NCBI GenBank assembly: GCA_004431415.1
Contig: QPMI01000564.1
Coordinates: 208,570 to 272,569, forward strand
Direction of reading: 5' to 3'
Origin: Cyanophora paradoxa CCMP329
Taxonomy: Eukaryota; Plantae; Glaucophyta
Length of the DNA stretch: 64,000 nt
Of the stretch, positions 43,370 to 55,443 are shown piece after piece (the stretch's first letter is position 1; each line of letters opens with the position of its first letter). The translations under genes and the position numbers were made by a program. Under the pieces are notes generated by a model. That model made no database searches and was not told the DNA's origin. It was given only the letters and a program-made list of their open reading frames with translations.

Positions 43370-43768
43370 TCAAAACGGGAATCTATCATGTTTATGTCTC
43401 TCAGTCTTCTCAAATGTGAGGAAATTCATTGTTTTATCGATCTCATCTGCTACTGATTGTGTTTTATGCTGAGCTTCTTTACCACAGCTGAATATATCTA
43501 TTGCTAACATGCCTTCATTGGAATAACAATGAGCTGTGCAATGGCTTTCATCTAATAGCAGAACCAATGCAAAACCAGGAGGTGATATTTTGCCATCAAA
43601 TATCTCACAGTGTTTATGAACAATTCTTATGCCTTGTCTTAATATAGCTTGTTCAAGGGTTCCCATAATCCAATTACCTAGGAAGCTAACATGCTCATGT
43701 CCTGTTGCAATAGCTGATTTAGCCTTGTAATCAAGCATAACATGAAAGCCTCTGTATTGAGTCTCCAT
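43370..43768 (-). CDS. speD: S-adenosylmethionine decarboxylase proenzyme (prokaryotic class 1b type)
   Basis: GFHVMLD, PPGFALVLLLDESHCTAHCY, AIDIFSCG. Confidence 0.88.
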   Translation of the reverse strand: METQYRGFHVMLDYKAKSAIATGHEHVSFLGNWIMGTLEQAILRQGIRIVHKHCEIFDGKISPPGFALVLLLDESHCTAHCYSNEGMLAIDIFSCGKEAQHKTQSVADEIDKTMNFLTFEKTERHKHDRFPF

Positions 43769-44086: not shown

Positions 44087-44565
44087 TTATGGAGCAGTAT
44101 CCTGCCCGAAAATGGGGAAATATCGATTTGTCCCATAATACTCAGCATAGGTATTCTGCCTTGCAATAAAATCGGTTCTCTCAGCATATAATACACACTT
44201 GTAGATACCAAACTTGGTGGCTCTAACCAGAAACTGATAGTCTTCCAAACCGAAATTGACTCCATGATAAGCAATACCAAAATTATCATATGGGGTGATC
44301 ACAACTGCAAAATTAGGAGTTCCACCCTCTACTTGACAAAGAGCATAAACATCTGGTGGGATATCCACAACTACCTTGTAGTGGTCACCAATTTCAACAA
44401 GAGAGTCTACTACTGCTGTTTGTTCATTCACAACAATTGGGAATATCTTTATAATGTATGGGGCATTCATGCTGGGGACATAGGTTCGAATTCTTGTGTT
44501 GGGATCAATGGGATTGGGTTGATCATTCACAAATAGAGGCGCTCCAACAGCCCCACCAACCCTAA
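44087..44565 (-). pseudogene. C-terminal part of the fibre paralogue split by the transposon
   Basis: Joins 55444..55801 in frame (834 nt) when the insert and one TAA are removed. Confidence 0.88.
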
Positions 44566-44878
44566 CGTAAGGAGCTGTTTCGCATGTCGCAGACGGCCCC
44601 GGACGGACCTCGACGGGCCGAAAACGGCGCGACCTTTTGGACATCCCGCTAGTTCGCGAGCTTTAACAATGGATGGAATTTGAATTTTGAACACGGCCGT
44701 GTCACGGCGGCTATCAGCCGGCTGAGTTCGAGTTCGAGCTGGCTAGACCAAATTCTATATCCCCCCAAGCCATCTCCCCCCCCTTCCAAGCCACGGCCAG
44801 CTGCAGCTAGATTGCGGCCAGCCACGGACTTGCGCGGGAAAAGCAAAAGCGCTTATAGCTTAGCGTTCGGCGATCGAG

Positions 44879-46683
44879 ATGCCGCTCTCTGTGCTGTCTG
44901 CCAAGGTCGGCTCAGCGTTCGGTTCCATTAGAGCGTGGCTGGGCGGCGCCAGCGATGGCAGGCCGCGGCACGGCCAGATTGGCGGCAGCACCTGCGGCAG
45001 CCAGGACGACCTCGGCGAGGACGTGAATCCAGACGACTTTGGCGACGCAGCTTTGAGCGAGCAAGTCGTTCAGCCTGCGCATGCAGCGCCAGCTGCGCAT
45101 GCGACGGCCGCGGTCGCGCTGGCGCCTCCCGCGGCGGAGCCGGCGGGCGGGAGCGACTCCCCACAAGTCTCGCCAGTACGCTCAGAGCTCGAGCAGAGCC
45201 CCGGCAGCGGCTGCTGTGAGACGCCAGGGACGCCTTTGGGGGGGGGTACGCCTGTACAGCCGTGTACGCCGCCTGTCGCAGCTGCCTCATCAGCGACCCC
45301 CGTGTACACGCCTGATCGCCCGCGTCGCAAGCGGGTAGTAGCTGCGCCCTCGCAATCGCAGCCTTCGCATGATCAGCCGGCCACGCCTCCACGCACGCAG
45401 CCGCCGGCGGCAGCGGCCTCGCCAGCGACCCCCGTGGACATGCCTAAGCGCGTGAGTCGCAAGCGGGCAGCGGCGGCGACCTCCCAGCCTTCGCCCGCGG
45501 CGGCACCGAGCGAGCAATATGAGGATCCCTTCGTTGCCATGGAGCGGTATATGGACGATCCCTCTGTCGCGCCGTCGCCTGCCAGCTCAGCCGCGAAGAA
45601 GCCAGCCCCGAAGAAGCCCGCCACGTCCACCAAGCAGCAGTGCAAGCGGCGCAAGTGCGATGTCGAGATGACGGGCGAGGAGGAAGATCGATTCACCCCC
45701 TGGGACAAGCCCGGGCGGCACCGCTTTCGCATCGAGGAGGAGGACGCCGCACTCTATCGGAGGCTCACCGGCTGCAAGCGGGTTTCCGATGCGGTTCGCA
45801 TGGCGTCCAAGCTCCTTGAAGCGATCGAGTACCTTCAGCAGCGTGTGCGCGCGCCGTTTCACGCCGCCGTGCGCTTCGCCCGCAGCTTGCCTCGCTGATT
45901 CGGGCCGCAGGATGTCCTAGACAAGGGTCTAACTGGCGCGGAGCTCGCCAATCAACTGAAGGCGAAAGTCGACGTGTTCCTCCGTGCACCGGCGCAGCGT
46001 GAGGAGCTCCAACAGAAGTGCAGCTCCCTGGAGCGGGAGCTCCCTGATCTGCGGTGGGCCAACAGGGAGAAGCAGCGGCAGATCGCTCAACGGGAGGAGA
46101 AGATCGCTCAGCTGGAGAAGGAGATGATGCAGCTCAACGCCAGTCTGGTGAGCCCGCCGGCCGCCGCGCCGCCCGCGCCGCCGGCGCCCGCAATGCGCTG
46201 CTGACGGCGGTCCCTCCGGCGCCCGCAGAGAGCGACTCGGGTCAAAAACCTCGAAGAGGAGTGCGAGGAGCTGCAGAACCAGAACGCTGCGCTGCAGACG
46301 AAGGTGGATGACTTGGAAAACAAGGTCCGCGATTGCCCACACGCGTGCGTGCGCCCGCTGGCGCGTAACGCGGCGCGGCGCAGGTCTCAAGGATGAAGAG
46401 GAATTGGGACTTGGAGTTGGAGCGTGAGGCGAAGGTGTGGCGGAAGGAGGAGCGCATGTACATAAAGGAGGTGGAGGAGCTGGAGGCCGTTATCGAGTAT
46501 CTCTACATGAGGGACGTGCTCATGCGGGAACCCCGGGGCCTAGGGTCGCAGGGTGGGTCGCCGCGGTCCAGCAGCTACACGCTGCTGTGCCGCCGGAGAC
46601 GTCGCCTTTCGAGGCGCCCGCCATCGGGCGCTAGCCCCGGCCCGCTCGCTTCGTCCTGCATAGCTAGAGCTCTCATCGGATGA
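44879..46683 (+). CDS. Multi-exon Pro-rich and coiled-coil hypothetical protein (transposon cargo)
   Basis: ORFs 44879..45898, 45974..46204 and 46393..46683 are separated by GT..CAG intron-like segments. Confidence 0.5.
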
Positions 46684-48180
46684 GAAAAATTTGTGTTCCT
46701 TTTGCGCATGCGTCGCCCACACGACAGCCGGGCGGGGACGCGGGGCGCGGCTGGGTTGGCTAACTGTGCGTGCATCCGGAGCCTCCGAGCAAGCCTAGCC
46801 TATAAGCTCGGCGACGCTGAGCTAGGTGCGCCCGGCGCGCCTGGTAATCTGCTCGGGAAGGTCGGAACGGCTTGGGCACGGAACCGGGGTCGGCCGCAAA
46901 GGCGGACCGTGCCAGACCCAATCGGCGCTGAGCTACGCCGGCGCGCCTGGTAATCTGCTCGGGAAGCTCGGGATGAGTCAAGGCCTCGCACCTGGGGCTG
47001 GCAATCCATGCACTGCGGCAAGCAGCCGCTGCCCCCACCGACCTCGTCTCGCAGAAGCGGGTCACGGAGATGAAGGAAGACCGCGTGAAGCGCCGCGGGC
47101 GCTCTCGTGGCATGCCGGGCCGGGCCGGGCGTATGCGTACCCGGTTGGCCAGCGGAGGAAACTCGGCTGACTGAGCGGCTCGCGCTTTCGACAACGTGGC
47201 ACTGTGGCACTGTAGTACACCTGGCGAGGCGCACGCCGCGACAACGATTCGGCGAGGCGCACGCCCTCGCCCGCGAACTTGGAACATACGCACGCCTGCC
47301 CTGGATCGCGGACCGAGCCTCGGAGACTTCCGCCCTCTCCGAGGCTCATGGCTGAAGCTGCGATAGCATGGTGCCGGCTGGCTGAGGCCGCCCGTGCCGG
47401 AGCAGCTGCAGCCGGGGCCAAGTGGCTGGCCGGCGCCTTAAGCGCGCGGCTGCACTGCGAGCGGGGAGCTGGGCTCGCTGTCGGCGGCAATCTTATCCGC
47501 TCTCAAGGTTTCGCAAGGCTGCGAGCGCGCGGCGACCCCCGGTATCGCGTTCGCAATTTTTGATCTGCCAGGGAATCTGCACTCCGAGGCTTGCGATTGA
47601 AGCACGGCAGCCTCGTATCTTGATTAGAACTTTTTATTCAAGATGTAGAGGCGTCACACGGCGTTATTTAGTGCCCTGCACAAAGCCCCCGCGATGGGCC
47701 CATTTAACCCGTCATACCATATGACTCATCATACGCCTATACACTACGTTACAGCTAGTCTTCTGCTGACTTTTGGCCCTTCCAAATTGGGCCCATCGCC
47801 CCAGGAGCTGGGAGACATCGAAAAAAGCTTAGAGAACCTTTTTAAAGCACTATATAAGGCCTCCTATGCAGCTGCAGGGTCGGGGGAGGCCTTGTATGGC
47901 GCGAAAATAGGCTCCCGAGGCCCCCGGACTGCCAGAGTGTCCCGGAGGCCCCGACTGTCCCGCCAGGCGCCCCGCCCTGTCAGCCCGCCCCGCCAGCCCG
48001 CCCGCCACTCTCGGTAGTCACTGAGTGCCACGGTGCCACGGTGCCACGGTGCGCGCACGATAGCAGAATAACTAGTAAATCTGTCGTATTCAAGCCAGGT
48101 GCAGACTGCAGCTGGTGACTCTAGCTGCAGACATCGTCCGGCCGCGAGACGAGGACGCCGTCGCCGGCAGGGCGGCGACC

Positions 48181-48435
48181 GGCGGGGCGGGGCGGGGCCG
48201 GCGGGCGGGGGCGGGGGCGGCGGGCGGGGCGGGGCGGGGCGGGGCGGGGCGGGCGGGGCGGCGGGGCGGGGCGGGGCGGGGCGGGGCGGGGCGGGGCGGG
48301 GCGGGGCGGGGCGGGGCGGGGCGGGGCGGGGCGGGCGGGCGGGGCGGGGGCGGGGCCGGCGGGGCGGGGCGGGGGCCGGCGGGGCGGGGCGGGGGCCGGC
48401 GGGGCGGGGGCGGCTAACGGCGGGGCGGGGCGGCT
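48181..48435 (+). repeat. (GGGGC)n tract with G-quadruplex potential
   Basis: Visible directly; flanked by a 35-bp direct repeat (48132-48166 and 48460-48494). Confidence 0.9.
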
Positions 48436-49997
48436 AACGGCGCTACGCTTCGTCGTCGGCATCGTCCGGCCGCGAGACGAGCACGCCGTCGCCGCGACGC
48501 AGGCGGCGGCGCTTGCACCGAGCAGCAGCAGCAGCCCCGTCCGCCTCCGCCGCCGCCTCCGCCGCCTCCGCCGCCGCCGCCGCCGCCGCCTGCTGCTGCC
48601 GGATGCGCACCCGCTGGAAGTGCTCCGCGCACTTGAAGAGATTGTCGCCGAAATGCTCCATCTGCCCCGCCCGCCGCTGCAAGGCCGTCACGTTGTCATA
48701 GAGAGGCTTGAAGGCCGCCTCCTCGTAGAGCCCGAGGGGTCCTGCCCGCAGAAGCGCGCCGTGCTGCGGTGCTTGCGGATCTCCGACCGCAGGTTAATGG
48801 CCTCGAGGAGGTTGTTGTGCGCCAGCGCGACCTCGAACTGCTCGTACAGCTGCTCGTGCTCGCGCATCCACGCGCGCGCGTACTCCAGCAACTGCTTGAG
48901 CTCGGCCAGCTTGTATGGCCTCACCGAGTCGCGCTCTATTGCGAGGTTGACCTCCAAAGCTGCCTGGTGGCGCCGCCTGATCTCATCCTCCTCCTCGAGC
49001 GCGCGCTCCTCGTCCGCCTTCATGCGCGCCCTGCGCTCGGCGCGCTGCCGCTGGTCCATCGCTCTCCGAGTCGCTGCTGTTGATCTCGATGACAGACGAA
49101 GTCATTGGGCGATTGCACGGCGCGTTGATGGTCTCCTCCTGGTCCTCCTCCTCGGACACGTAGTCAGCGGGCATATGCTTCGCTCCACAGCTAACATAGC
49201 TACACTGTCGATGCGACATAGCTAACGCTTGAGGCTGCTTCAGGCCCACCAGCTGCAGGGCGTTCAGCTGGAGTTGGACGTTCAGCAGTTTGCGTACCCA
49301 GTCTGGGCATGCTCCCCTTGCTTAGCGCGTCATACCCATATCGACGAGCGAGCATCGCGGCCGGCAAGGACCGCGCGGGTGGACCAGCCGCTTCGCCTAA
49401 GGTAGCTATGCATCGCAATTGCGCATTATCGCGCATGCTGGGCTCGCCTGCTGCTCTTCGGCGCCTAACTGTCGCGGATGTGTATGCTTGCTCGCGGCGC
49501 TCGGAGCTGCCGCTTCCGCAGATGGCAGGGGAGGTACACGCGATCTTTTTTTCCGAGTTTTGAACCCGCCCGCGCGATGCAGCGACCCATCGCGCCCCGT
49601 CCCGCGGCCCAGCCCGCGCCCCAAACGTTTCCAGCGCCCGCAGCAGTCGTTTTAGAGATGGCGGACGCGTCGGTCGCGTACCAGGCGCTTATGCGGATCA
49701 TCGCAGTGCTCACCCACAGCCGAAACGCCCACCTGGAACTGGAGGCGCGCGGCATTGCGTCTCCATTGTATCCGCATAGCTTAGCTTGCACGGCGGCGCT
49801 TCAAGAGGCCACCGCAGTGGCTGTGTTCCTCCAGTGCATCCTGCAGAGCCCTCCAGCTTCGCCACCCGGGTCGCCATCGGCTCCAGCGAGCCCGCAATCG
49901 CCTCAGATTAGCCCAGAGCAGCAGCAGCAGCGCGGTCGTCGCGCGTTCGGCGCCGACGTGGTATGCCGCTCATTCAAATTCGATGTCATGACTTGAC

Positions 49998-52900
49998 TTG
50001 CCCGCGCTTACGAGTGTATGCTCTCTGCCCGGCCGCGAGCAGACGAATGCAGTTCTTAATGAGGCGCCGAGCCCGGCGCCGCGGCCGGCCCCCGGCCCCG
50101 GCACCGCCCCGAAACGCGCTCGCGGCAAGGAAGATGTGCCGCCTGAGGAGCGGATCGTCCGCAAGGCGACGCTCAAAGCGCGCGACGAGCGCATCGCAGT
50201 GCTTGAGGCGGAGAACAAGAAGCTTAGGGAGGAGCACCAGTCGAAGCGCGCCAAGGTCCCGCGGACTTCGGCACAGCGTGCAGCGACCATCTCGCGCATA
50301 GCTAGGCAGGTCCCTGGGAAGGGATGCTCGGATACGTCCAGGCAGCGGCGCACGCGGTTCCTCCGCATGCTGCTCTCGACGATTCTAAACGCTGCGAGTC
50401 CGGACATCCAGATCCGCCTCCCCATGTTTAAAAAGAACTTCGCGAGGTACAAGGCGGGGCGGCGCGCGCGCAGGCATATGCATGCTTATCCAGGGCGCCC
50501 CAGGAACAAAGGAGAGGAGGAGGGCGCCTATCAGAAGAGGAGGGAGGCGCTGGAGGCGGAGGCACGCCGCCTCGTGAGCATCATCGGGCCACACGCAGTG
50601 CGCGTTATTATACATAAAAAGAGCTACCGAGAATCGTACTTTAATAGGCTACAAAATCGTTGGAGAAGAGCACCTTTCTGAACCACCGTCCGCAGGCCCA
50701 ACGAGCCCTGGAAACGAGCAAATCGGGTCAGCTGCAAGTGAAGAAGGCGATGAGCATCGCCTGCAGGAAGCTGCGGGACACCTTCCCCGACTGCGAGATT
50801 CTAGAGTGGAAGGACCGCCACTGCATCTCGGACGTGCGCCCTTTCTCGAATGTTTTAACCCCCATCCCGTTCTAAACCGACCCGGGCAGGCGACGTACTT
50901 TGAGTTCACGAAGCTCCTCAAGAAGGCCCTGAAGAAGCACTTCGTGGGCTGCGAGCCTTCCTCCCGTCGAAGCACTGCATCACGAAGCTACGGGGCAAGG
51001 TCAACGATGACCTCGAGAAGGCGCGGCGCGCGCGCGCGGGGCGGGGTGAGGGACGAGGCTCACCGAGCGGTGCAGATCGTGCAGATCGTCGAAACAGCGG
51101 CGGGCGTCGGCGACGAGGAGAACAAGGGCAAGCCGGGCGTCATGCTCGAGCTCTTTGTGCCTCCGTCGAGCGCAGCGCCGGCGGCGGGCGGAGAGGCGGC
51201 AGCGCCGGCGGCGGGCGGAGAGGCGGCAGCGCCGCCGCCCCGCAGAGCTGTCACGCCGACGCCCGCCCTGTCGGCCCTCATCAGCGCTTTCGTCCCGCTG
51301 CACAAGCACAGGGGGAAGAAGATCAGACCTCGAGTCCGCCTGGCGGGCGACGGGACGATCGCGTTCCGCGGGAAGAGCGTCTCCACGACCGACGGCATGA
51401 CCTGCATCGTGGCAATCGTCGACGGCTACTACGTCATCGAGGAGGACGGGACGCAGGCGTACCACCCGCTGAAGGGCGTTCAGAGCTGCTACGCCCTCCT
51501 GCCCCTAATGCTCTTCGGCGGTAGCGACAGCGAGGAGAACCTGCGCCCACGCATCAAGCCCCTCGCCGACATGGTCGAGTACCTGAACGAGAACCCGCTC
51601 ACCCTGATCCCGGGTACGAGCACGACAAGCCCGTCGAGGTCGAATTCTTGGTGACGGGCGACTACAAGTTCCTCCGCGTCCTCCTCGGCTTCGACCTGTG
51701 CCCGCACTGCGATTCTGTCCACCGACGCGGGTCAGTTCGCCGAGTCACACGCGCTGAGATTCGGCATGGGGCTCACGTTACTGCAGGTCCGAGTGCTCGG
51801 CGGTCGAAGTCGTGCGCGCAGCAGGGCCGCGGGATCGGGACGGCCTCCCTCCAGCCAGCGAACAGAGAATCCGCACCCCCGAGCACGACGCCAACGCCCT
51901 CCTGCAGCCGCTCCCGAACAGCATGCTGCCCGTCGCTGCCGTCGAGGTGAGAAGCCCGCGACACCTCGCCTCAGCGGACGCCAACGCGCACCTCAGGTCC
52001 GGCTCGACGACGCCCTGCACGGCATCAAGAGCTGGGTGGCCGGGTTCTTCGTCTACTTCTTCCTCGCCCTCGCCTGTGGTGCCTCCGAGGACCAGCAGAA
52101 GCGCATCGAAGACCTGCAGCGTCATCTTCGCGATAAATACGCGCGGAACATCAAGTTCGAGAAGACCGAGAACGGGGCCACCTACAAGTTCTTCCAGAAG
52201 ATCTCCGCCAACACCGCCAAGAAGATCCTGGAGGACCCCGAGGCGCCCGACACCCTCTTCAGCATCTGCTTCGGCGACAGTAAGGAGAGCTGGAGCGAGA
52301 AGACGAGGGGCATGCACGAGATTTGGCAGCTCCGCCAGATCATCTACCAGTACGAGCGGAACATGAAGCCCGACGAGGAGGCGCGGCAGCAAGTTATCGA
52401 GGCCGTCGCCGAGCTCCAGGGCCTGATGGAGACACACTTCCCGTTATGGAAGATCTTCACACGCTACATGCACTCGACGCTTGCGCACCTCGCGTTCTGG
52501 GCGCGCGTCGACAACACGAACGCGCCCGGCCGTTGGAGCTGCGAGGTCATCGAGTCCTACATGGGCCTCCTTCGGCGCCTGCGACACACCGTCACGTCTC
52601 TCGGTGGCGGGTGGAACAAGGACCTCGACATGCTCAAGCAGATCATGACGCACCAGCGGCGGCGCCTGGCGCTGTGGATGCGGAACATGACGGAGGCGAG
52701 CGCCGGCGGGAAGGACGCTGCCCACGCCGAGTACGACGCGCCCGTCGCCGCCAAGGCCTGGCCAGATGGGCCCTTCATCCCCCGACCTGCGGCCCGTCCC
52801 CACCGGTCAGCGGCTATGCAGGGCGAAGGGGCGGCGGCGGCGCCGCCGGGGGCGAGGAGGTGGCAGCGGTGCCCCTGCCTGCGGACGAGGAGGAGATCGA

Positions 52901-53126
52901 CGAGGATATTGAGCTGCAGGAGGGGGATCCGGTGCCGGAGGACGAGGTGCCCGAGGAGAGCGGGGACGAGGAGGAGGAGGAGGAGGAGACCGCCGAGTAC
53001 GACGCCGAGGCAGAGGAGGAGGCGGAGGAGGAGATGGAGGCGGAGGATGAGGGCGCCAACATGCTCGATTTCGATGATAGGGCCCTAGCAGAGGTTCTAG
53101 CAGACGATCTAGCGGAGGGGAAATAG
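49998..53126 (+). CDS. RAG1/Transib-like (CMC group) DDE transposase, multi-exon, with acidic C-terminal tail
   Basis: RLAGDG (D ~51349), PLMLFGGSDSEENL...IKPL, GDYKFLR..G..CPHC (D ~51660), DALHG, YMHSTLAH, GRWSCEVIES (E ~52552); introns 51021-51075 and 51947-51996. Confidence 0.82.
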
Positions 53127-53165
53127 ACGAAATGGATTTGGACCAGACATAGCGCACCTTGTAAC

Positions 53166-55194
53166 CTAGATAGTGCGATTCTCAGTAGCAGCTTCACGAC
53201 TTTGCCCTCTTGCGCGCCGCCACCGCGGCCGCGAGCTGTGCCGCGCGATCCTTCCTGCTGCAGGATTAGGCGAGCAAGTAGCCGAGCGGGGGCGAGGGGA
53301 GGGGGCGCACTTGGGGACCGAGGCGGATGCGGCGGGGGCAGGTAGGGCGGCAGCGGCCGGTGGGGCAGCAGCAGCAGGGGCCGACAGGGCGGCGACCGGC
53401 GGGGCGGGGGCGGGCGGGGCGGCGGCGGCGGCGGCCGGCAGGGCGGCGGCGGCGGGGGCCGGCGGGGCGGCGACGGCGGGGGCCGGCAGGGCGGCGGCGG
53501 CGGGGGCCGGCAGGGCGGCGGCGGCAGGTTCTGAAGGGGCTGCTTCGGGGACAGGCGGCGCCTTGGCGACGGTGTTGGCGCCGGCGCGGCACCGGCGCGG
53601 GCGCTTCACGGGACAGCCGCGAGGGGCCCCGCGAGGCTGGCGATGCGCTCGCCGTCGGGGCCGTACTCGTAGCTCGGAAGCTCGAGCGTGACGTGCCCAC
53701 CTTTCCTGCCCGAGCGCTTCGTGGCCACGATCCGACCGGGACCTGCCGCGCCCAAGGAGCAGAGCTTCGTAAGCGAGCGGCGCGGCGAGGGCGGGCCGGG
53801 CGCACGCTCGTCGAACTGGACGACGTCATGGGAGCCCGTGTGGCGCGGCACGATTAAGCCGCCGTACGCCTTCTCGACGGTGACGGTCTGCATCTCGCTG
53901 TGCTTCCGGATCGCCTTCCCGTCCGCGTCCCGCTTGCAGACGCGCTTGGACGCTTGCGCCACGCCGGAGGGACCGAGAACAGCTGCAAAGAGGTCGGAAA
54001 AAGAACAGCGAGCGGGAAAAAGGAAGCGGCTTCCACCAGCAGCGGTCTCGCGGTCCGGAAGCTCGATAACGAAGCGATTCGCCGCCGGCAGCTTGTCAAC
54101 CGGGATCGGCTGGCCCGTCTTCGGGTCGATGGGCGTGGCGACGTGCGCGACCTGCGCCACGATGTTCTCCTGCGATGCGCACCGTTAGAGGATAGGAAAA
54201 AGAACTTCGAACGAGTCATAAGAGCCGCAGACCAACATTGCCGGCCCGGCCACCGGGATCTTGACGTTGACAAGCTGCGTCCCGGTCTTCCGGCGCTTGA
54301 GGGCGTTCGCGGCGGCGTCCTGAAGGTAGCCAATCGCCTCCACGCGCTCCTCCGGCCTCGACAGCGGCCGGAGGAAGCACGCCATCTTCTTCTTCGCCAC
54401 TCGCTTGAGCCTCGCGTTGAAGGCGAGGGCGACGTCGAACTGGAAGGAGCCGTCGCCCGGGAACGTCATGATTTGCTTACAGACGTAGATGTGGGGATCG
54501 GCGTGGTTGAGGGCTTTGTACTCGTCCGCGGCCACCACCTTCGCGGGTGCGTGAACCTGCGCGCACGGGCATCGGACGCTGGAACGGGGCGCGGGCGCGG
54601 CGGGCGGACCGTCACGTTCGAGTAGTAGATGAGGTGGTTTGCGATGGCCACGGCTGCCTGCTCCCCGTCTGCCTTGATGATCACGCTGCCGAGCCCGCAG
54701 TCCTTCACATCGGAGTCCTCCGGGCGCACGAAGCGCCGAAGGATGACGCCGTTGACGGAGTAGTTGAAGTCGCCGCGCTTCGCCTTCGTCTGTGTTGGGA
54801 ACTCGCCCTCGACTCGCGCCAAAATCGTTTCACCTGGGCGCGGGAAATGGAAGGGCTTCGGGCGAACGACGCTGAGTTCTGGACACAGCTGGGTGTCTGA
54901 GCTAACTGAACAGATGACGAAGTCGCCAAGGCGAACGTGGTAGGCGCGGCCGCTGGTGTCCAGGCAGCGGACCGTTGCCGCGGGGTGCTCGCCCTTGAGG
55001 ATGTCGAGGTCAGGGAGCTTGGGCTCCTTCGCCTTGCGCGCCTGCTGAGTGATCTTGTTGACACGCTTCATGTTGCCCTTGCCGGCCCACGAGCTGCTGC
55101 TGTCGGGTCGCTTGCCGTGCCAGCGGTGCCGACGTCGGGCCTCGTCGAAGCCGTCATCCCAGAGGCTGGGTTCCTTTCGCTTTGACTGCTTCAT
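53166..55194 (-). CDS. Multi-exon BAH-domain-like protein with PAPAAAAL-repeat tail, convergent with the transposase
   Basis: YHVRLGDFV, ILARVE, LRRFVRPEDS, LIYYSN, VVAADEY, IYVCKQ follow the BAH motif order. Confidence 0.6.
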
Positions 55195-55443
55195 GCACGG
55201 CGGCGTGCAGGAATGCTCGCGCTCGGGCGTGCGCGATGGCGGGAAGCTAGCTAGTCCGGCCTAGCCGAGGGAAGCTGACTAGCAAGCCGGCCTGCTGACC
55301 GTTACTGTGACCGTTGTGGCCGCGTGTGTACGCCACTGTGTACGAGGCCAAGTTCGAGCTCAAGTTTGCGCTGGGCTAATTTCATTGGCGGAAGAAGTTA
55401 ACAATGGGCGGGGCGTGACGCAAACTCCGTTCAGTTTGAAACG

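Follow-up and report, generated by a model that had tools for sequence, protein, structure and literature searches.

A young DNA transposon of Cyanophora paradoxa with a transposase of RAG1-like architecture and a spliced antisense transcript

What kind of mobile element interrupts a virus-like gene in a glaucophyte, and how near does its transposase stand to RAG1? Both questions are raised by a stretch of 64,000 nucleotides from Cyanophora paradoxa CCMP329 (contig QPMI01000564.1, positions 208,570 to 272,569; hereafter the window), in which the GC fraction rises from about 0.38 to 0.60-0.83 precisely across positions 44566-55443. A sequence-only reading had taken this block for a RAG1-like transposon paired with a convergent BAH chromatin-reader gene. 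In this study, we examine the boundaries, copies, genes and transcripts of the block (Table 1). It is likely, in our judgement, to be an autonomous and recently active cut-and-paste transposon, whose transposase represents an orphan lineage of the CMCT clade (CACTA/Mirage/Chapaev/Transib) and which has inserted into a fibre-like gene of an endogenous virus-like element.

Excision of the block together with one TAA (10,881 bp) leaves an open reading frame (ORF) of 277 amino acids on the minus strand. The restored ORF aligns with an adjacent paralogue at 55828-56733 in one high-scoring segment pair (aa 9-253, 34% identity, E 2e-41), and the insertion junction, at aa 118/119, falls within the aligned region. 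Public read contigs, both DNA and RNA-like, were compared with window positions 49640-55630. A contig of DNA run X1 carries the empty site, in which CCCACCAACCC (window 44552-62) stands directly before 55444 with a single TAA. The GC-rich insert with its flanking TAA and restorable ORF, as first read from the sequence, is confirmed by this empty site and by the paralogue alignment. RNA-like contigs derived from other copies match the element to 55443 (or 55445) and then pass into unrelated flanks (CACCGCC... and TA+CACGGG...), and the same right terminus adjoins at least three different flanks. Since the other copies share sequence to 55443 and then diverge, the right end is fixed at that position. 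Their flanks differ, and therefore the target is not always TAA. This single insertion fits a duplication of 2 bp, TA, for which the element would begin at the A of 44565, as well as it fits a 3-bp TAA duplication. An 8-bp duplication of hAT-like type, AACGTAAG (44564-71 and 55440-47), was rejected: it would shift the frame of the host ORF, and the empty site holds TAA only.

The inverted identity of the two ends is limited to 3 bp, CGT/ACG, as had been claimed. No longer terminal inverted repeat (TIR) was found by local alignment of the two 400-bp ends, which scores 19 as compared to 19.7 +/- 2.4 in shuffles. A weak subterminal motif, GGAG(N0-3)TTT(C)GCG, occurs in inverted orientation at 44572-44583 and 55419-55428, lying 5 nt inside the left end and 15 nt inside the right; it may be due to chance, and the copies are too alike for its conservation to be judged. 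The direct, non-inverted 10-mers TTAACAATGG and AGTTCGAGCT are also present near both ends.

The element is a young, recently active and mobile DNA transposon. Copies with about 99% identity occur on eight or more contigs of Cyanophora, where the gene models (P0001, P0002/3 and P0005-P0009) are 96-100% identical to the window, and those identical to the insert are EukProt models of Cyanophora paradoxa. An alignment of P0006 with P0007 covers about 578 residues, of which 6 differ, and the two are also distinguished by one 27-bp repeat unit. This unit, which encodes AAGGEAAAP and lies at 51172-51198, is present in two or three copies depending on the element copy and is omitted in one RNA contig. 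No further copy was found within the window by blastn. RNA-like contigs cross the right end of the element and extend 0.9-1.8 kb into two different host flanks, so transcribed host regions contain or overlap at least two other copies. Beyond Cyanophora no relative was found among 15 billion proteins, metagenome contigs and viral contigs: an exhaustive HMMER search with exon 51973-52755 against 1.84 billion representatives returned Cyanophora self-matches and one low-complexity repeat protein only, word-indexed searches with the partner gene and with the region of the first motif (D1) returned Cyanophora copies only, and scans of metagenome and viral contigs with P0006 residues 400-830 returned no relative.

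Such an insert could have been mimicked by a chimera of the assembly, or by host DNA recombined into viral DNA, and the want of a TIR longer than 3 bp, in a long-read assembly with indel errors, would suit that explanation. It is effectively refuted by the read contigs and is scarcely credible, given an empty site with exactly one TAA, a right terminus that recurs on three or more flanks and near-identical copies on different contigs.

Table 1. Coordinates of the element, its genes and motifs, and the interrupted host ORF (window positions)
Feature	Position	Strand	Basis
Transposon, 10,878 bp, GC about 0.65, ends 5'-CGT...ACG-3'	44566..55443		
Target-site duplication, left TAA	44563..44565		sequence; single-TAA empty site in reads
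Target-site duplication, right TAA	55444..55446		sequence; single-TAA empty site in reads
Transposase gene, sense model P0006, 944 aa	49658..53152	+	motifs; gene models; GC at codon positions 1/2/3 0.58/0.40/0.91
LAGDGT (D1)	51340-57	+	transposase motif
GDYKFL (D2)	51657-74	+	transposase motif
CPHC	51699-710	+	transposase motif
DALH	52009-20	+	transposase motif
MHSTLAH	52468-88	+	transposase motif; Hx4H at 52471-88
WSCEVIES	52534-57	+	transposase motif
1-nt deficit (CCC for CCCC), frameshift in transposase gene	51608..51609	+	extra C in X1 DNA contig and three RNA contigs
Spliced antisense RNA across transposase gene	50708..53157	-	12 GT..AG introns of 49-371 nt; three RNA-like runs
Convergent partner gene	53480..55194	-	ATG at 55194; RNA introns; third-position GC (GC3) 0.83-0.85
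Left-hand gene, Pro/Ala-rich N-terminal part then coiled-coil segments, intron-split	44879..46680	+	ORFs; GC3 0.75-0.81; P0007 starts with this ORF
Second left-hand coding region, acidic and coiled-coil pieces	48691..49321	-	ORFs; GC at codon positions 1/2/3 0.64/0.47/0.85
Interrupted 277-aa virus-like fibre ORF, C-terminal part	44087..44565	-	ORF restoration; paralogue alignment
Interrupted fibre ORF, N-terminal part	55447..55801	-	ORF restoration; paralogue alignment

All six transposase motifs listed by the sequence-only reading are present on the plus strand between 51340 and 52557. In P0006 they correspond to D418, D522, C535xxC538, D603ALH606, H757x4H762 and E781/E784, to be set beside D600, D708, C727, C730, H937, H942 and E962 of mouse RAG1 (PMC4914335). 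The successive spacings between the two aspartates, from the second aspartate to the cysteine pair, from there to the histidine pair and on to the glutamate are 104, 13, 219 and 19 residues, as compared to 108, 19, 207 and 20 in RAG1. Models P0006, P0007 and P0009 read through the frameshift that the window shows at 51608/9. This frameshift is probably a homopolymer or assembly error, and the transposase gene is probably intact, because the missing C is present in a short-read DNA contig and in three RNA contigs. Relative to the window, short-read contigs have one extra G or C at 50945, 51608, 52847, 53116, 53287, 53295 and 53609; these are indel errors made at homopolymers in the long-read assembly, with the result that reading frames of the window are broken.

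The strand that encodes the transposase must be argued for, since the best-supported RNA joints over much of the gene lie on the opposite strand. All 12 of the best-supported RNA joints between 50.7 and 53.2 kb, drawn from three RNA-like runs of three studies, are minus-strand GT..AG introns, and they cross the sense coding sequence, the Hx4H motif included. In addition, bidirectional ORFs and overlapping untranslated regions (UTRs) have been described in C. paradoxa by Price et al. (PMC6704402). These observations invite the explanation that the plus-strand ORF is a compositional mirror of a real multi-intron gene on the minus strand, that its RAG1 likeness is spurious and that the insert moved by other means. 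We rejected this mirror explanation on codon-position GC and hold it to be highly improbable. The plus frame is the coding frame because of its codon-position GC (Table 1), and this pattern persists through the antisense introns, whereas the spliced minus-strand frames have no such periodicity. No convincing ORF was found on the spliced minus strand, which has a stop mid-way and a junk-like translation rich in Leu, Val, Gly, Asp and Arg. The plus-strand protein, for its part, has the ordered series D-D-CxxC-DxxH-Hx4H-E, and RAG1 comes up for it in each of two independent tools. RNA also supports one GT..AG intron in the sense direction, 50447-50503, in record 8 of run X15; the same contig holds antisense joints and is probably a chimera of an unstranded assembly. 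The antisense RNA looks like a continuation, as 3' UTR or read-through, of the transcript from the partner strand. Convergent UTR overlaps are common in this genome, and one of 2.4 kb with 12 introns is extreme among them. The spliced antisense continuation is new here, as is the recognition that the window frameshift looks like a homopolymer error.

The placement of the transposase as an orphan CMCT lineage, RAG1-like in architecture, follows from the literature, in which CMCT lineages make 2-5 bp duplications and have mostly CA..TG ends, and in which the orphan ESTA likewise has RAG1 as its best HHpred match (PMC12730594). The RAG1-like architecture is common to the wider transposase clade. 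In P0006 we find the CxxC and Hx4H pair of that clade (window 51699-710 and 52471-88) and, at RAG1-like spacing, D418, D522 and E781/784 as candidates for the DDE triad; the target-site duplication of the element (TAA; formally 2 or 3 bp) is in the size range of the clade. RAG1 families are the only named neighbours in the ESM comparison, where they account for nine of the ten best named matches, and RAG1 occupies ranks 1-13 in Foldseek. The best match in a shape search of the Atlas is an unnamed diatom protein (TM 0.41).

Several results weigh against this placement. The ends are CGT..ACG, not the 5'-CA..TG-3' that CMCT elements have in most cases, and over the catalytic core the RNA contigs with the best support run antisense. 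No significant transposase match was found by Pfam, by phmmer on the PDB or by HMMER on the 1.84 billion representatives. All exons and models P0001, P0002, P0005, P0006 and P0007 match no Pfam family, with none at E<=10 for the transposase, and phmmer with three transposase pieces and the partner found nothing relevant in the PDB, with no chain at E<=10 for the transposase. The Foldseek E-values are 0.2-0.5, from a single-sequence structure model with a predicted local distance difference test (pLDDT) score of 62.6 that falls below 50 over the part from Hx4H to E. In an unbiased structure search of wide scope, RAG1 is level with unrelated helical bundles, while the top 50 do not include HzTransib.

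With RAG1, Transib and ProtoRAG the element shares a candidate DDE triad, a large insertion that separates the second D from the E and that holds CxxC, DxxH and Hx4H at nearly identical spacing, and RAG1 as its best Foldseek and ESM neighbour; like ProtoRAG, it carries a second gene convergent to the transposase. It differs from them in a 3-bp (or 2-bp) rather than 5-bp duplication and in CGT..ACG ends that have only 3 bp of inverted identity, without the CAC heptamer, spacer and nonamer of TIRs resembling recombination signal sequences. It also lacks a significant match to RAG1-core Pfam models or PDB chains at E<=10. The partner has no kelch or PHD domain that Pfam could detect, as a RAG2-like protein would, and two extra genes and a glaucophyte host further separate the element from these systems. 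With EnSpm/CACTA and Chapaev (Chapaev3) it has in common a 3-bp duplication, motifs of the C(2)C and H(3-4)H type (PMC12730594) and large multi-gene organization, but its termini are neither CACTA nor CAC..GTG, subterminal repeat arrays were not detectable, and no CACTA-type transposase was matched in Pfam. The ESTA, Plavaka and Lanisha elements (Kojima 2025, PMC12730594) are likewise known mainly by CxxC and H(3-4)H in highly divergent transposases; their duplications are short (2-3 bp) and PlavakaA has non-CA ends, TGT..ACA. However, ESTA and Plavaka are fungal and, compared by description, their termini and gene sets differ from those of the element. A kinship closer to RAG1 and Transib than to the CACTA, Mirage and Chapaev (CMC) groups is not established. 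The interpretation given with the sequence-only reading is partly supported: the claim of a RAG1-related lineage holds for the motif series and its spacing and fails to fit Transib and RAG in the duplication and the ends.

The convergent partner is a minus-strand gene with GT..AG introns at 54557-54609, 53983-54036 and 53743-53805 from RNA joints. A fourth intron, 54170-54232, is indicated by a loose end and by a shortfall of 63 nt in one contig, and splicing of this intron removes an apparent stop at 54185-7. The spliced ORF has at least 450 codons and continues into an Ala/Pro-rich tail; indels in a GC repeat make the end of this tail uncertain. Spliced models were joined in scripts for reading of frames, and searches were run by exon or with stored gene models. 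Four motifs at 54942-54712, YHVRLGDFV, RRFVRPEDS, LIYYSN and AKVVAADEY, resemble those of BAH chromatin readers in the right order, a likeness at the motif level only. The partner differs from such readers in that the insert separating its RPED-like from its LxxS-like motif is longer, and in the further regions of its product; neither Pfam at E<=10 nor the PDB gave a BAH match in exon-by-exon or gene-model searches, and the AlphaFold 2 model of exon 1 (pLDDT 31) is unusable. Two additional coding regions with high GC3 occupy the left half of the element, the first with sub-threshold coiled-coil/bZIP Pfam matches only and the second with no Pfam family. With at least four genes, the element is thus more than a two-gene unit; of the pairing first proposed, the convergent partner stands, with its RNA introns on the minus strand, and the two-gene arrangement does not.

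These results bear on the proposal that the lineage is tied specifically to RAG1 and Transib and that the partner serves as a RAG2-like, chromatin-reading cofactor, which would make the element a ProtoRAG-style two-component transposon in a protist. The named ESM and Foldseek neighbours, a motif spacing almost exactly that of RAG1, the convergent orientation of the two genes and the order of the BAH-like motifs all speak for it. However, the motifs are clade-wide, and ESTA orphans match RAG1 as well because, within CMCT, structures have been solved for RAG1 and Transib only. The duplication is of 3 rather than 5 bp, the ends have no CAC or heptamer-nonamer, and neither RAG1 nor BAH is matched in Pfam. 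The low confidence of the partner model, the other regions of the partner and the two more genes of the element also argue against a two-component system, and we regard this proposal as unlikely.

The preferred reading, an orphan CMCT transposon, would operate as follows. An RNase-H-type triad (D418, D522 and E781 or E784 in P0006) would be interrupted by a large helical insertion with CxxC...Hx4H at positions like those in RAG1, which makes a zinc site likely. The enzyme would cut both ends, probably by nick-and-hairpin chemistry like that of RAG and Transib, and integration with a 3-bp stagger would have duplicated TAA in the fibre-like gene. The spliced antisense transcript from the partner strand may damp transposase expression.

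The DNA that received the transposon differs from it in composition and gene content. AT-rich stretches with GC of about 0.38-0.42 (1-8.5, 42.2-44.6 and 55.4-64 kb) alternate with GC-rich blocks; the former are dense in intron-less ORFs, and the latter match the high GC of the host, the genome of which has 67.6% GC and many short introns (PMC6704402). The AT-rich flanks look like an endogenous virus-like element because their products include fibre-like proteins bearing C1q heads, a phage-tail-repeat/H-lectin protein, a patatin and also an AdoMet decarboxylase. Tandem fibre-like paralogues at 55444-59150, the interrupted ORF among them, have an N-terminal module in common and differ in their heads, with C1q in the ORFs at 57003-58028 (E 2.8e-7) and 58051-58806 (E 3.4e-12). 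The AdoMet-decarboxylase-like ORF is at 43370-43768 (E 5e-11) and the patatin-like phospholipase at 62376-63302 (E 4.5e-21). Contig depth, summed in DNA run X1, is about 8 times as high over the AT-rich viral flank (55440-55630) as over the transposon (51000-55400), although contig depth does not equal copy number; the virus-like element may occur in multiple copies, only some of which hold the transposon. A second GC-rich block, at about 8500-42200 (about 34 kb), also interrupts the AT-rich virus-like DNA and has no DNA similarity to the transposon.

The finding alone leaves the picture of RAG origins unchanged. Should a deep-branching sister of RAG1 and Transib be active in a glaucophyte and work with a convergent chromatin-reading partner, which we think quite improbable, the logic of a RAG1-type transposase plus a chromatin-reader cofactor would predate animals and would have arisen or persisted outside them, and the spliced antisense overlap would be a built-in control of transposase expression. 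The locus presents a host transposon colonizing endogenous viral DNA. Because filled sites, empty sites and near-identical copies exist, the chemistry by which the element excises and integrates, what the partner protein does and antisense control are directly testable. The element, with atypical ends, no TIRs and no sequence-detectable relatives, is an active and experimentally tractable addition to the transposase clade from which V(D)J recombination arose, and comes from a lineage, the glaucophytes, in which none had been described.

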